Below, piece after piece: positions 27,341-37,000 of a DNA stretch of 64,000 nucleotides (the stretch's first letter is position 1; every line of letters starts with the position of its first letter). This DNA comes from Auanema rhodensis (Eukaryota; Animalia; Nematoda), in the NCBI GenBank assembly GCA_964057225.1, contig OZ059896.1, positions 7,316,001 through 7,380,000 of the forward strand, read 5' to 3'. Under the pieces are notes generated by a model. That model was not told where the DNA came from. It saw nothing but the letters and a program-made list of their open reading frames with translations, and did not search any database. The translations under genes were made by a program, and so were the position numbers.

Positions 27341-27744
27341 TACGATGCTTGTGTCTAATCATAAATACATAGAGATGATCCTTAGAACATTAAACGGAAA
27401 CTGCTGTAGCTTGGCGTTCAACTACAAAAAAATAAAATTTTGATTATTTAGATATTTAGACGATATAACTAACTCAAGAAGCCTAGGAGTAACCCAATTA
27501 GGTGGTCTGGAGAATGATTCTGTTAAAAATTGCAGAAATCACCACGATTACGACTGAAGCAGAGCCTGAAGCACGGCAGAAGTAGGGAACAAGCCTTTGA
27601 GAAGAGAGTACTCGGCAAGTATGTCTGAAGGGGCGGAGTCTGATGGCATCTGCTGAGGTCCGCCTAAGACCCCGCCTACTTTTTTGTGCATCACTTGCAA
27701 ATTGTTGCTTTCAAGGGAAAGAACATGAAAAGAGAGAGGGGGTG

Positions 27745-27779
27745 ATATATATATATATATATATATATAGAAAAGTGAA

Positions 27780-27856
<77 letters not shown>

Positions 27857-27877
27857 CTGACCGAGAGAGAGAGAGAG
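27745..27877. repeat. (AT)n followed by long (GA)n tract just upstream of the three-finger receptor gene
   Basis: Direct inspection; explains the spurious RERERE ORF 27643-27894. Confidence 0.95.
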
Positions 27878-30160: not shown

Positions 30161-33100
30161 TTAATTCAAAGTTAAATATAATATCAAACTAATCATAGAT
30201 GATATTAACCAACTAAGATGAATTGTTAATGAGCACGGTTGATTAGTGCTTTCCTGAAAAGAAAAATATTTATATTATGGAAATAATATGTTTGTAATCT
30301 TTCATACCTGTGTTACATCAGCATCTGTACCAAAGCACATAGCTCTTGATCTTTTCGGTCTTGAGTGTAGCTCGCCTATACAGATATCTTCCAAGTTCTT
30401 ATCATTTCTATCTTCCTCCCACGTCATAGTTGTCTTAAATTATGAAGGAAGGTAAATAAAATATCTGAGAATAATATTATTTGAAACTTACATCAGTATT
30501 TTCTAATTTGGGACAAGCTACTTCATCATAACATAAATCAGATTGATCTTCTTGATTAATCCATACCATTAACAAGTTTGTACCATCAACGAATGACGCA
30601 TGCATTTTTCTGGAAAAAAAAATTGTAAAAAACTATTCAAATAGTTCAAATGTTATATGTATAAGTTATAACTTGCTAGCTTTTATATATTTGTTTTAAA
30701 CAAAAAAAATTGAAGTAGAGGGAAAAAAATGTTTGAAAACATACACAGAACACTTCGTTGTAGGACAAGGCTTATCATATCGTCCAAACTCTATAAGACT
30801 GCTTGACTTTGGCCTAGTTCGTGGATTCTAAAAGGTTAATTAAAATTAAAAATAAATAAATATTTTACTAAAATACCTTATTAAACAAATAAAAGAACGA
30901 TGTCTTAGAGCATGGATAACCATCACTTCCATCATGGAATGAAGCTGTATATGCTATAAATAATATAATTTATAAATTCTAACATATAGTTAGAAAATAT
31001 ACCTTGTGTTGTACTAAATGTTGAACTAAGTAATGGAACAAAAGTAATTTTTTGGATTAATAATAAGAATTTATTAATAAAGTAGAATAATGTACTGACA
31101 GCACTATGTAATGGCTGAAATGTTTTGTAAAAATAAATAATTTTAGTTCATTAAGTAACAAACCTTTAAAGATTTTGATGACATAACTACTTTAGGTTGT
31201 TCTTTGCATATAGCTTGATGGTCAGTATATTTGAATCTAAAAGTTTAATTTAAAATAAAATCTGACTCGGTTTAGAGCGTTGTTTTTCGATCACAGAATT
31301 CTGAGACTCTAGGGTATCTTCATTGTCGAATGTAGGGTTCAAACTTGAATTGTTAATACCATACCAACAAGTTATCCAATACACTAATCAACTACAAAAA
31401 TAGTTTGATGTGTTGCCTTTTTACAATTTTTGTTATCACAAAACATTGCTTTTGCAAAATCTGACTCAGTTAAAGAGCTTGTTTTTTCGATCATAGAATT
31501 CTGAGACTCTAGGGTATCCTCATTGTCACGAGCAGGATTCGAACACTTGAACCCGGTAGTACTGTGGCGCTCTCTTGCGATACACCACACTTACTCACTT
31601 CGTATAGAATTTCTTTTCCACTAGCAAGGACATTGCGCGTTGTGATACCCGGTTGATGTTGCCAAACCAATGACTGATATGCTTTCCGTGTTGAAGAGGT
31701 CCCTAAAATATATAATAATAATATAAATTAATAAAAATATTTAACATACACTAAGATAATCTTCATATGAAATATCTTTTTGATTGCTATAGAATACATA
31801 ACCATGTTCATCAAGTAATAGACACCATTTTCGATCATCCTTTAATTATATTTGAATTATTATAAATCCATATATAAACAAGAAAACTACCGATGGACCA
31901 CATCCATGTTCTCCCATAAGATTTACTACATGATCATAAACAAATTCATAGCCAGTAACACCTTTAAACAAAGAAAAATTAATATTTGTATCTTAAGAAG
32001 AAGGTAGAAGAAAAATACCTAAAATGGCATTTCCTGACTTTATAGCTCTTGTTGCTTGGGCTAACATAGTGAGATTTTCATTATTTCCAAATCCAGTCAT
32101 TTGTGTTTCAGATTTATACCATATTTTGGCTAAAATAAAATAAATTCATATGTTTATATATAGTTTAAAACATACAATTATTGCTAACATCAAAAACAAT
32201 ATCCCCAGGCATACGAACTGATCGTCTATAGTAATAATCATCAACTGATTTTCGATTTAAATCAGTAATGAAATGATTATATGATCTAAATAAATATAAT
32301 AATATTATTATTATTATAGTAATAAAGCATACTCTTGAACTAATTCAATGGCAAATATTCGACCAATATGATCTAAGATACTCCAGTTTGGATCAGAATA
32401 ATCGTAATCATCCAAAGTTAAATTATAATATCTGATCATACCAGATGGAGCTGTGAAGAATACCAAATGTATTAAATTACTGAAAGTAGTATATACATAC
32501 TCTAATTCTTTATCATTCGTCTTCTTACTCTTTAAGGAATTGCCAGTTTTGATCCCAACTATCTTGAAGAGCAGATGTAGCTTCAAGATCAATTAATAGC
32601 TTTTCAACAAGATGTTGCCTAGCTTTACACAGCTCAGGTATCTTTCCAGTGCTAATCATCTGTTGTACATAAACAGTAAAAGCATCTTCCTTTGATATAT
32701 TGGTATCAGTATCATTAAGTAAACAATATCTCCAATGTGGATGTACACGAAACTGTTTAGATGATATCCATTCATGCTTTATACGTCCATAATCATAATT
32801 ACGTTCACGTCGACGAATACGATAATCATCTCCTTCAGCTATAGCTAAGCCGATTCTGAAAAGATTTTCGATTATATCAGCATGTCTAGCTTGTAATTTT
32901 GTTTTTTTTTCTTATTTTACAGCTGAAGAATATTTTTAAAATGAAAAAAAAAACTACAATTGTCACATACATGAAATTTGCTCCATTTATACATTCAGAA
33001 TAATAGTTATTAGTCTGTGGATATACACGTAATAAATTTTCTGTGGCAAATAAAACATCCAATTGTTGCTCTTCGGAATTGTCACAATCGAAGATCATTT

Positions 33101-33995
33101 TTCTTGTCTGAAAAAAAATTATTTTACAACACAATAAGAGAAATTATAATTAGCGGATGCATATTAAGCTTCAAATAATCTATAGGGATTAGAAGTTGAA
33201 ATAAGAAATAAAAACTAAATTATTTCAAAGCTTAAGTATCAGGCAAAATACTAAGTAAAAGGCTACAAAAGCATTCTTATTATGATAGATTAATGCGCTA
33301 TTTTTAGGTTAGATATTGAGTTAAACGGACATGTAAAGCAGGAAAAGCTAGAAAATAAGGCAAATGGTACAAGAAAGTTACTGGATAATCAACAATATGA
33401 AACATGCTCATGCAATTTCGTGCAACATGAATAAGCTATAACATCTCCTTTTTTTTTGTTAGAAAAATCATGCAATAATGTCTAATATGAAGAAAAATCA
33501 TCGATGATTTAGGATTTTGAATTTTCTATGGATTGCTTTAATCCATTAGCTAGTAGAAAACAATCAAAAGATTCTACTAACAAGACCTAACGAGCCACAC
33601 ATGGAAATACATACGAGTAGAAATCATAAAGGATAGATAGAAATTAGAAGTCCTACAAGATTTCGGATTTCTGCCACGCATTCGGAATATGAGCCATGCT
33701 CGCAGTTGAAGCTCGCTGAGTTGTCCCCCGATGATAGCTGCGCCAATCGTATCTGTATTGAAGTTTTCAAGAGAGTTTAGAGAAAAATCATCTAAGATAA
33801 TCCATCAGTCTGTCCGATAGCCGGCTACTTTGGGAAATATAGAAAGTAATGGGGATGCCTCATATCAAAATCGTAATGGTATTAATGAATATGAAGTAAG
33901 AATCAAGAGTAAGACACCAGAATCTGTTGAATGGATACATAACAATTCTACAGGTATTCACGACTAATACAAAAAAAAATGCTAGGAAGAGAGCT

Positions 33996-34052
<57 letters not shown>

Positions 34053-37000
34053 AAAGGATAATTTCATTAAGGAGATTAAAAATGAGGGGAATTGGTGAAT
34101 ATTAGAAGCATTAAAATTAGAGAAAATGTGCTTGAGATTTAGTTTTAATTGTTTTTGTTTCAAATAGCTGTGATGCAAAATTATTAGCAGCATTCGCATT
34201 AAAAGTTAAAAGTTGAAGCCAGTGAAAATAAATGGTTTGGTATTAAGCCACTCATATAGTGCGATACAAGGTTCGGTCATTCACATTATTAGTTTTATAA
34301 AAAAAATTGAGAATAAAAACACATAAAATGAGTTTGATATTTGAAGTATATGATAGCACACTCAAAAAAAACTTTTTTTTTGTGAAAAAAATGAAACGAG
34401 CGGTAAAATGGAAAATTTGGAATTTGTTTGAATTATACGTACCTGTTGAGATTGTTGAACTTCTAATTCAAGAATATCCATATTATTATAATTTTGTTTA
34501 TGAAGCTTTGTGATAGGATCCTAAAAGACGAGTTATGATTAAGCATGACAACTTGAAGTTGCACATACAATTGCTCTGAGTTGAGGATGAAGTATGATAA
34601 AGCCATTTTGATCCAACATAAAGAAATAACTCTTAGCACCAACCTTAAATTAAAAATAAAAATATTATATATGAATAAAAAAATAAAATTTACATTTGAT
34701 GGATGAGCTAATTGATTTAATTCAGTTAATGGAATATTAACAGCAGCAACACCCATGAATGTCTCATTAACTATTACAGGAAATGAAACTGTTGTTACAA
34801 ACATTCGAGAACGTGCTTCAGTTTTTTGAAGTCGAATTTTCTGAAATAAATGAATTGAATAGAGAAAAAGTATGAAAAATTATAGAAAATAACAAAAAAT
34901 AAAGAATTATTACCTTTTTAGCTGCCATTTTATTCATAACTGCAAATGATTGGTTAGTGATAGGTACAGGTTCAGCAAATGTTTCTGGACGAGGTATATA
35001 CTGAAAGAAATGAAAGATCTTTATGATTTTCATTAAGAAAAAATTTTACCAATCGTTCACGATAAACTCCACTCCACATTGCACCTTCAATGCCTATATC
35101 TGCTGCATGTTTTCCAATAGGTCGAGACATTGTACGAATATAATGCTGAAATAAGAATAAAATAGGATGAATGAAGTAAGAAGAGTATTGTTTTACCTGA
35201 ACTTTCTCTTCAACATCAGCCATATTTTGTACATGAACCATATATCCTCGATTATAACATGCCATTTGTTTAACTTGTTCAAAGTCAATAGCTTCTTCTC
35301 CGATCAAAAATGAGAAAAATCGTACCTAAAATTGATAATTTAAGAAAAAATAAATAAATTTAAAACAAATAAAAAATGAAATTATGATATACCTTTTTAT
35401 CTTTATTATATAAATCAAAAATTTCCTTATAAGCATTAGGTGCTCCATCAGTAATTAACATAATTACATTTTCACAACCTTGAGCCGGAGCTTTCCGACC
35501 TGCTTTTGTTATCTAAAAATATTAAAAATTATATTAAAAATATAAAAATAATAATAAAATTGAATAAACACACACTTATATACATATGTATGTATATGAA
35601 ATAATGTGTGTTGTATGTGCAAAGATAGAAGAAGAAGAAGGAGAAGGAGTAATAGAAGATAGATGAAGAAATGAAACATTTGAAGGAACTACAGTTCAAT
35701 CACATCCAAATTTCACAAAATAAAAATCGTTGGTGTTCAATTCATCGTATAGATAACACATCAACAAAAAAAGGTAAAAAAACAAATGATACTCAGTCAT
35801 ATATATCATAAAAAATATTTTTTCATACAACTGATTAATCACATTCATAGTTTTAATTGAATTTTTCTTCTTCAAAAAATTCAATTTAATTAACATTTGA
35901 CATATCAACACAAATGACTAATATTTAATATATTATTATTATTATTAATATATAATTTTTATGTTAATTATTTTAATTTTAAGTAAATTTAATACATTTT
36001 AATGATTTGAGCAAGTTATCTTTTCTTTTTCTAATCATATTTTTGTTTGTTTATTTGTTTGTTTGTTTTGAAATTTAAAAGCAACAGAAGCACTATGAAG
36101 CCAAAACAAATAGAGAATTAACTTGATCATACCAGAAACAGTATTATATTTTCTATCAAGCAAATGCAAAAGCAATGAAAAGCAACACAGATAGAATCAC
36201 ACAAATAGAAGACACAACATACTATACATACACATGCAATACGCATCAATTCAACAAGCATAGTGGTACATAAAGCATTAAACTTACGGCATCATAGTAT
36301 GGTCGATCATAAACAAGAAAATGTTCTGGAAGTTCCGTTATGTTCTTTTCTTCCAAAATTGTGCTATTTTGGAGCAGAACAGCAAATTCTTCTTTGTTGT
36401 AGATTGTCCATCGTTTCGGTAGCTGTTATAGATACGAATAGTCTTCAGTATGACAATGGACCAGATATTATATCTCAGAATCAATATGCATTTTTGAAAA
36501 AAAAAATTAATTTTTTTGAATTTAAAGACGTATTTCGAATGATTCTGAGAAATAAATATCATTTTAAGCAAAACATAAGCTATCATATATCATATATATC
36601 AGTTATGATAAACTTTTAAGCGACTGAATTTAAGCAAAGCAACAAAGGTAAGCAAGGTAACATATAGTTTAGCCAGACATTTAAATATAAAGCATAAGCT
36701 CAGAAGGTTCTTAACTCAAGCAAATAAGCTTACTGTAATACATTTAACATATAACATGAAGCTTCAATTATAACACAAATGATAAATGTTATTCTAAATA
36801 AGCTTTTAAAGTAAATTAAAACGAATTGTTATACTACGAATAATGCTGGATAATTTGTTCCTGTTGACATATTATTAAATTATTTAAAAAGAATAGTTTT
36901 GTTATAATAAAAATTATTTTCTTATAGTTTTTATTAATGTTTTAATGTTTTAATATAATTATAATATTATAAATTACTTACATTCAGAAGGGTAGTAAAA

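Follow-up and report, generated by a model that had tools for sequence, protein, structure and literature searches.

Box C/D snoRNAs have a C box (RUGAUGA) close to the 5' end and a D box (CUGA) close to the 3' end, joined by a short terminal stem, and accumulate as stable RNAs, ~60-100 nt long, in association with fibrillarin, Nop56/58 and Snu13; a guide of ~10 nt or more lies directly upstream of D or D', with the target nucleotide opposite guide position 5. The UM2 snoRNA loci of C. elegans, reportedly described by Deng in 2006, are the closest known counterpart of the genes considered here. In this class, A and B boxes stand ~33 bp apart in a leader upstream of the snoRNA, and transcription begins ~70 nt ahead of the mature 5' end, at a point ~9 nt before the motif (PMC2527325). 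This layout is an experimentally shown promoter in C. elegans, where T4 is enough for termination (PMC2527325). UM2 loci, e.g. CeN37 and CeN55, are mainly C/D snoRNAs and often lie in sense-strand introns of unrelated hosts (PMC2527325; PMC1474057); the intronic ones are expressed independently of their host genes, and 52 Pol III-bound TFIIIC sites fall at C. elegans snoRNA starts.

Two tandem units of comparable layout lie in one intron of an unc-36-like gene of the nematode Auanema rhodensis (a 181-Mb, 30%-GC genome), in a window of 64 kb, by which we mean the whole stretch of DNA analyzed. Both are on the host sense strand, and each runs from an A box through 30-31 nt to a B box, a short stem, a C box, the guide CUAGAGUCU, D', C', a D box, the closing stem and TTTT (Table 1). 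We give a probability of roughly 70% to the reading that these are two tandem-duplicated snoRNA genes of the ceN44 family, with a SNORD52-type D' guide, each forming a self-contained UM2-type Pol III unit. Like UM2 loci, both copies combine a matching A/B gap (31 nt in unit B, 30 nt in unit A) with a ~70-nt leader and a T4 run just past the 3' stem; unlike them, the two units share an intron in tandem, the A box of unit B begins 12 nt past the 5' splice site, which puts the predicted start right at the exon border, and the genes are known here from sequence. The yeast snR52 gene, the Pol III snoRNAs of Drosophila and the dicistronic tRNA-snoRNA genes of plants (reviewed in PMC2527325) likewise have a type-2 Pol III promoter ahead of a C/D snoRNA in a single primary transcript, although the plant genes contain a real, functional tRNA that is cut by RNase Z, whereas the Auanema leader lacks a tRNA fold. 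The C. elegans mir-1829 family (PMC12487709) resembles the Auanema units in being intronic and host-independent, with upstream A/B boxes and T runs right after the RNA; its product, in contrast, is a Dicer-dependent miRNA hairpin (PMC12487709) and not a C/D snoRNA.

Table 1. Coordinates of the snoRNA-bearing intron and of the elements of both units, counted from the first letter of the window.
Feature	Position	Strand	Basis or remark
Host intron, 362 nt, alpha2-delta (unc-36-like) gene	31237-31598	-	GT..AG reading and spliced RNA contigs
Unit B predicted Pol III primary transcript (leader + snoRNA + T4), ~143 nt	31456-31598	-	Predicted from UM2 geometry
Unit B A-box-like element TGGTGTATCGC	31577-31587	-	Starts 12 nt into intron; 31 nt upstream of B box
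Unit B B box TGTTCGAATCC	31535-31545	-	Window motif scan; 1 mismatch to GGTTCGAANCC
snoRNA B, box C/D, ceN44-like	31461-31528	-	Rfam ceN44 50.6 bits, E 3.8e-10; SNORD52 21.7 bits
Unit B 5' stem TGAC	31528-31525	-	Sequence reading
Unit B C box ATGAGGA	31523-31517	-	Sequence reading
Unit B D' guide CTAGAGTCT (= CUAGAGUCU)	31504-31512	-	rRNA complementarity; also in copy A and ceN44 consensus
Unit B D' CAGA	31503-31500	-	Sequence reading
Unit B C' ATGATCG	31494-31488	-	Sequence reading
Unit B D box CTGA	31469-31466	-	Sequence reading
Unit B 3' stem GTCA	31465-31462	-	Pairs as UGAC/GUCA terminal stem
Unit B T4, candidate Pol III terminator	31456-31459	-	2 nt past snoRNA B 3' stem
Unit A predicted Pol III primary transcript, ~142 nt	31257-31398	-	Predicted from UM2 geometry; sequence aligned with unit B
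Unit A A-box-like element TAGTGTATTGG	31376-31386	-	Sequence reading
Unit A degenerate B box AGTTTGAACCC	31335-31345	-	T replaces conserved C of GTTCGA; 2 mismatches
snoRNA A, 3-bp stem	31262-31328	-	Rfam ceN44 39.6 bits, E 5e-7
Unit A C box ATGAAGA	31323-31317	-	Sequence reading
Unit A guide	31312-31304	-	Identical to copy B guide
Unit A D'	31303-31300	-	Sequence reading
Unit A D box CCGA	31270-31267	-	Sequence reading
Unit A T4 run, after snoRNA A	31257-31260	-	2 nt past stem

To characterize the host intron, we compared the genomic reading with RNA contigs. Spliced contigs from four runs carry the joint 31236/31599 and skip exactly 31237-31598, with GT at 31598 and AG at 31237 in the minus-strand reading, which bears out the 362-nt intron of the unc-36 gene proposed in the initial annotation; six neighboring introns measure 47-57 nt, versus 362 nt for the one that bears the snoRNAs. 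The unspliced intron is present in a separate low-depth contig, and contigs cover it throughout, including the spacer and both exon/intron junctions, at ~9-20% of mRNA depth, the RNA data consisting of assembled contigs, from which transcript starts and ends are not readable. Among the introns of the neighborhood, only this one is represented by an unspliced contig.

Alignment of the two units shows that every element described in the initial annotation is in its place in the minus-strand reading. Relative to unit B, the elements of unit A are displaced downstream by exactly 200 nt for the C box, D' and B box, by 201 nt for the A box and by 199 nt for the D box. From the stem to C' the copies share 93% identity (38/41); this falls to 67% in the D-guide segment and to a near-random level in those parts of the leader that are not boxes. 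These values match the earlier observation that the segment before D' is invariant, while the D-guide segment and the leader have diverged. Box C/D ends are present in both copies, with the C box, D box and stem reading AUGAGGA/CUGA/UGAC-GUCA in copy B and AUGAAGA/CCGA/GAC-GUC in copy A. Both C boxes are non-canonical, D' reads CAGA and each terminal stem has just 3-4 bp; the K-turn GA dinucleotides are kept in both copies, whose C boxes deviate at base 5, and in copy A base 2 of the D box deviates as well.

Rfam searches place both copies near ceN44 (RF01634), a Caenorhabditis family whose catalogue label is "snoRNA C/D possible". At gathering thresholds the 64-kb window contains no Rfam match; in E-value mode ceN44 matches copy B with 50.6 bits and copy A with 39.6 bits, both under the gathering score of 70 bits, and SNORD52 (RF00276) matches weakly (21.7 and 18.8 bits, against a gathering score of 45). 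By model score, then, both copies are significant relatives of ceN44 outside its curated cut-off. They align with it over the full length and share the D' guide block CCUAGAGUCUC, which is invariant between the copies and equal to the ceN44 consensus, as well as a similar 3' end (GCUCU...CUGAGUCAG) and an unusual C box; they differ in a shorter C-box region and in the D-guide end. SNORD52 has the guide core CUAGAGUCUC in common with them, directly ahead of D', although the human gene is released from a Pol II host intron, whereas the Auanema units have tRNA-like promoter boxes. The literature searched gave no genomic location for C. elegans ceN44. Together, the family match and the box architecture support two box C/D snoRNA genes, and the Infernal/Rfam check on snoRNA identity came out in favor of both copies.

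The two genes do not appear equally sound. Copy B is the stronger gene; in copy A the B box is weakened, the D box reads CCGA and the stem is shorter, which makes it a weaker or decaying paralogue, and the initial annotation was right to call its B and D boxes degenerate. A stricter version of this view, in which only copy B works and copy A is a decaying duplicate, is compatible with our explanation of copy B and seems to us a serious, if less probable, option. It is favored by the ceN44 score of copy A, 11 bits under that of copy B, by the T in place of the conserved B-box C, the 3-bp stem and the different D-guide segment, by the A-C contact (not U-U or G-U) that its CCGA D box makes opposite the AUGAAGA C box, and by a ceN40 pair elsewhere in the genome whose second copy is truncated. 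However, the 41-nt block from stem to C' remains 93% identical amid randomized flanks, which points either to continued selection on copy A or to recent gene conversion limited to the block.

To examine the leaders, we searched for tRNA features in them and their surroundings. ARAGORN reports 0 tRNA genes in the 64-kb window, the Rfam tRNA model gives no match at E up to 10 in 31100-31750, and the predicted leader folds are hairpins with no cloverleaf (z -0.8 and +1.3). Because neither ARAGORN nor the Rfam tRNA model detects a tRNA, tRNA-likeness is confined to the promoter boxes and does not extend to the fold; of the pseudo-tRNA promoter first proposed, the A and B boxes stand and the tRNA structure does not. 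On either strand of the 64-kb window, where 0.85 such sites would be expected, no sequence other than the unit B B box comes within 1 mismatch of GGTTCGAANCC; the 3' end of this box lies 6 nt ahead of the snoRNA B stem. The A boxes agree with the textbook consensus only in part, and T4 runs such as those that follow each stem by 2 nt are frequent in 30%-GC DNA. The A/B-box leader combined with T4 supports assignment to the nematode UM2-type Pol III layout, and the published class (PMC2527325) fits the C. elegans precedent of Pol III snoRNAs with tRNA-like boxes that the initial annotation had invoked.

On the UM2-type reading, TFIIIC would bind the A and B boxes within the ~70-nt leader, and Pol III would start ~10 nt before the A box (at the exon/intron border in unit B), run through leader and snoRNA and stop at the T4 just past the 3' stem. 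The leader would be trimmed off after snoRNP formation to leave a mature RNA of ~67 nt, whose D' guide CUAGAGUCU would place a 2'-O-methyl group on 18S U1295, with LSU U2503 as an alternative or additional target. It is conceivable as well, though improbable in our judgment, that occupancy by TFIIIC and Pol III at a distance of 12 nt from the 5' splice site would slow splicing of the neuronal channel gene.

Independent transcription by Pol III and a discrete small RNA are what we infer from this architecture; on the other hand, both snoRNAs might be real but cut from the spliced host intron, by Pol II transcription, splicing and exonuclease trimming, with the boxes and T runs being relics or chance. 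An unspliced host transcript that carries both snoRNAs does exist, in the RNA contigs that span the intron, and the continuity of the intron contig with both exons is the pattern expected from unspliced pre-mRNA; the commonness of T4 runs, the imperfect A boxes and the degenerate B box of copy A are in keeping with the same idea. We nevertheless consider it unlikely. A B box of the quality seen in unit B occurs once in the 64-kb window, exactly at the place that UM2 geometry predicts; the A/B spacing and the T4 right after the stem are kept in both copies; the leader layout recurs at several other snoRNA families of the Auanema genome; and the same layout is an experimental promoter in C. elegans (PMC2527325). 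Two snoRNAs per intron, the second ending only ~25 nt from the 3' splice site, are also a poor fit to splicing-dependent release.

The recurrence of the UM2-type layout was examined across the genome. A pattern made up of a B box and a subsequent C box gave 12 matches, versus 4 in controls, and a stricter version gave 3 versus 0. Among these matches are tandem groups of sn2903 (three units), sn1502 (three) and ceN40 (two) and a single ceN47, all with a B-box leader and a T run and with 31-32 nt between the A-box GG and GTTCGA; in the sn1502 array, as in the unc-36-like intron, the snoRNAs are conserved and the leaders diverged. Outside Auanema, a 128-aa exon search of relatives, made exon by exon and not with the joined protein, returned four fragments only, the best from Oesophagostomum (68% identity). 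In one distant relative (L011) the orthologous intron is missing, the exons being fused at that position, and the contigs of two others (L012, L013) end short of it. The contigs of the three relatives fetched contain no ceN44-like RNA, a search of metagenomes for the guide pattern yielded three matches that lack both snoRNA-like context and an Rfam match, and a literature search found no useful link between unc-36 and a snoRNA.

To identify candidate targets, we compared both guides with the rRNA of the same genome. The D' guide CUAGAGUCU is a perfect 9-bp complement to 18S 1291-1299 (10 bp if the first D' nucleotide is counted), a length at the low end for C/D guides; the chance of finding a random 9-mer in the rDNA unit is ~2%. 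In this register U1295 lies opposite guide position 5, so that the D' guide of both copies predicts Um1295 in 18S. The nematode 18S complement proposed in the initial annotation was verified in the organism's own rDNA (GAGACUCUAG, 18S 1290-1299). The same guide has an 8-bp fit to LSU 2500-2507, where the conserved SNORD52-type site GACUCUAG is present in the genome and the target would be U2503. We take this nucleotide to be the equivalent of human 28S U3904, which human SNORD52 guides. A free-energy duplex scan did not single out the 18S site, 12/40 shuffled guides being as good, and its ranking is dominated by bulged and G-U-rich duplexes. For the D guide, our search of the rRNA yielded no duplex of at least 10 pairs with at most 1 mismatch, except G-U-rich ones; a SNORD36-like 18S site was rejected as its target, as it needs 2 mismatches, one of them beside the target base. 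Instead of binding rRNA, the conserved GCUC may form base pairs with GAGU in the D-box region. The literature search turned up no RiboMeth-seq map for C. elegans.

The 18S site at U1295 and the LSU site at U2503, which lies beside the E site, share GACUCUAG, and the 8-9-nt core of the guide fits both. It is conceivable, but improbable in our judgment, that the ceN44-type guide is a shortened descendant of SNORD52 and that the pair methylates both subunits, or that the guide was retargeted from LSU to SSU in nematodes. Searching the genome for a true SNORD52, with its longer LSU guide, gave pattern matches at control level (9 vs 15); the only match to include a C box (L017) lacks Rfam support and was rejected.

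Given their tRNA-type A/B leaders and T runs, a combination also found in tRNA-derived SINEs, the units might be such elements, or another kind of dispersed repeat with a mere resemblance to snoRNAs. The single-locus status of the pair dismisses this reading: a DNA search of the 181-Mb genome with the 346-nt pair as query and a search with the ceN44 model, best candidates scored, returned only the unc-36-like intron and its two copies in place of the hundreds of dispersed copies that the initial annotation had named as the alternative. The snoRNA core in common with a Caenorhabditis snoRNA family also argues against it.

The UM2-type layout is already well described in C. elegans, and the locus introduces no new mechanism. 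Its two units add two unannotated snoRNA genes to the genome of a non-model nematode and offer two concrete candidate methylation sites, 18S U1295 and LSU U2503. They suggest that UM2 units expand by local tandem duplication, in which the snoRNA is kept and the leader drifts except in its A and B boxes. Considered with the further loci detected in this genome, they also suggest that snoRNA production from tRNA-type (UM2) promoters extends beyond Caenorhabditis.

The host intron begins with GTGAGT at 31598 and ends with TTTTAG at 31237 (minus-strand reading) and carries two units on the host sense strand, unit B (31456–31598) upstream and unit A (31257–31398) downstream. Read on the minus strand, each unit bears out the order of elements proposed in the initial annotation, from a tRNA-like leader through a C/D snoRNA to a T4 run. 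The reported 200-nt spacing is exact for the block from the C box to C′; leaders and D boxes lie 199–201 nt apart because of small indels. Between the units, identity is 93% over the 41-nt stem-to-C′ block and 67% over the D-guide segment; outside the A and B boxes the leaders are randomised. This matches the earlier reading of an invariant pre-D′ segment against a diverged leader and pre-D segment. Copy A, described there as degenerate in its B and D boxes, is indeed the weaker one and may no longer work: its B box reads AGTTTGAACCC, its D box CCGA and its C box AUGAAGA, and its stem is 3 bp long.

Features of unit B, in window coordinates
Feature	Sequence	Position	Strand	Basis
A box	TGGTGTATCGC	31587-31577	minus	sequence reading
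B box	TGTTCGAATCC	31545-31535	minus	sequence reading
5′ stem	UGAC	31528-31525	minus	sequence reading
C box	AUGAGGA	31523-31517	minus	sequence reading
Guide	CUAGAGUCU	31512-31504	minus	sequence reading
D′	CAGA	31503-31500	minus	sequence reading
C′	AUGAUCG	31494-31488	minus	sequence reading
D	CUGA	31469-31466	minus	sequence reading
3′ stem	GUCA	31465-31462	minus	sequence reading
Candidate terminator	UUUU	31459-31456	minus	sequence reading

In a scan of the window at gathering scores, no Rfam family reaches threshold. In E-value mode, ceN44, a Caenorhabditis box C/D family, aligns end to end with both snoRNAs, at 50.6 bits (E 3.8e-10) for snoRNA B and 39.6 bits (E 5e-7) for snoRNA A, and the block CCUAGAGUCUC is the same in both copies and the ceN44 consensus; SNORD52 and SNORD36 give weak Rfam matches to both snoRNA parts. 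The B-box consensus with at most one mismatch occurs on the two strands of the window only in unit B, ending 6 nt upstream of the snoRNA B stem (~0.85 such sites are expected by chance in 64 kb). A search of the 181-Mb assembly, scoring its best candidates, recovers the 346-nt unit pair at a single locus, and the genome's matches to the ceN44 model are snoRNAs A and B only; within that scope, a tRNA-derived SINE is ruled out.

In UM2, the C. elegans Pol III promoter motif that precedes snoRNAs, two sub-motifs resembling A and B boxes are separated by 33 bp. The transcript begins 70 bp before the mature 5′ end and 9 bp before the motif, expression requires both boxes, and transcripts terminate at the first TTTT (Li et al. 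2008, PMC2527325). UM2 loci inside introns reach much higher expression than their hosts and do so independently of host expression (He et al. 2006, PMC1474057), and 52 Pol III-bound TFIIIC sites coincide with C. elegans snoRNA starts (Stutzman et al. 2020, PMC6950938). Both window units share this geometry, with A/B gaps of 30–31 nt, leaders of ~70 nt, and a T4 run that begins two nt past the stem; the predicted start of unit B would fall on the exon/intron border, and a Pol III unit placed flush against the 5′ splice site might influence splicing of the host. Sequence and geometry together mark units A and B as predicted UM2-type Pol III snoRNA genes of a ceN44-like family, and the initial annotation is right in its essentials. 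The wording "pseudo-tRNA" fails structurally: ARAGORN found no tRNA, the Rfam tRNA model gave no match, and the predicted folds, of ordinary energy, contain no cloverleaf. The leader is a promoter-like relic and not, in structure, a pseudo-tRNA.

RNA contigs from four public runs (one study) place the splice joint at 31236/31599 (GT..AG, minus strand). Six neighbouring introns, spliced out in the same contigs, measure 47–57 nt, which confirms both the 362-nt size and how far it stands out from its neighbours. By similarity, the host exons form part of a calcium-channel alpha2-delta-type gene, an assignment made to type only (nematodes have a second alpha2-delta gene besides unc-36), from searches with single exons. 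A VWA exon has matches among the Pfam VWA families and the solved chains of alpha2-delta-1; for another exon, the best relatives at protein level are fragments from strongylid nematodes. The nearest relatives compared are distant; in one of them, a nematode represented by a contig from an ENA metagenome assembly (L011:2355-2500), the alpha2-delta exons flanking the snoRNA-intron position are fused, and thus the intron is not universal. Long CT/GA dinucleotide microsatellites at 33990–34070 and 27700–27860, in introns or intergenic DNA, translate as LSLSLS in minus-strand frames.

The only runs with the intron are assembled RNA contigs, and these reveal no small RNA and no Pol III initiation. 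In four of four it forms a separate contig, at roughly 9–20% of the depth of the mRNA contig, and the six short introns nearby have no such contig in these runs. The intron contig crosses exon junctions in two runs, as expected of unspliced pre-mRNA; in two (X3 and X4) it stops at 31266, no more than 4 nt from the snoRNA A 3′ end and short of the downstream exon, although this end may reflect low depth only. RNA carrying the intron therefore exists, the small RNA and the Pol III start being predictions.

Targets were sought in A. rhodensis' own rDNA. The 9-nt stretch that adjoins D′ on its upstream side is a perfect complement of 18S 1291–1299 (AGACUCUAG), placing guide position 5 opposite U1295. 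The 18S complement proposed in the initial annotation is real: its 10-mer GAGACUCUAG lies at 18S 1290–1299, counting the first D′ base as paired. A random or shuffled 9-mer has about a 2% chance of being present anywhere in the rDNA unit. Because of the weak SNORD52 resemblance we also inspected the LSU, where GACUCUAG lies at 2500–2507, inside the conserved context targeted by human SNORD52 (28S U3904); the duplex has 8 bp (guide positions 2–9) opposite U2503, which may be another candidate target of the D′ guide. The 18S pairing, with nine contiguous pairs, a 2-nt mismatch, and two further pairs, is the better fit. A duplex-energy scan was uninformative, with 12 of 40 shuffled guides matching the real guide's energy or better, and the D guides have no convincing rRNA partner.

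The same layout recurs elsewhere in the genome: a B box with a C box following within 4–25 nt is seen at 3 places versus 0 in two kinds of control, and a looser pattern 12 times versus 4 in control. Among the matches are sn2903 and sn1502-like arrays of three tandem units each, a ceN40 pair, and a single ceN47, all of them loci with B-box leaders and T runs. In the sn2903 array (L008:944-1600; G000:C6 near 11895164, minus strand), three box C/D genes spaced ~235–241 nt apart score 54–61 bits, above the gathering score, each carrying a T run and a leader whose B box is GTTCGAAC; the leaders of copies 2 and 3 are near-identical and that of copy 1 is different. The sn1502-like array (L029:1430-2480; G000:C4 near 8602685, plus strand) holds three C/D snoRNAs whose RNA parts are almost the same and whose tRNA-like leaders have diverged; the B box of the third is degenerate (GTACGAACCCC). 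This array resembles the window units in that the snoRNA was kept while the leader drifted after duplication. In the ceN40 pair (L034:1195-1600; G000:C6 near 7289667, minus strand), the first copy has a tRNA-like leader (58 bits); the second, ~200 nt further, retains only the 3′ half, lacks leader and C box (31 bits), and is likely a dead duplicate. Leaders elsewhere measure 31–32 nt from the A-box GG to GTTCGA, like those of the window units. Two other loci, L026 (G000:C1 near 15490155) and L033 (G000:C6 near 3943497), present a clear A box (GAGTGGTAA and AAGTGGTAT types) and B box, with a C box, a D box, and a run of T behind them; because they have this layout yet match nothing in Rfam at E 0.001, they are candidates for unannotated members of this snoRNA class. 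Separately, L031:404-2934 (G000:C5 near 9084786) contains at least 11 arrayed tRNA genes that share one model score and have a mostly 157-nt period. The two intronic units of the window would be additions to an already known gene class.
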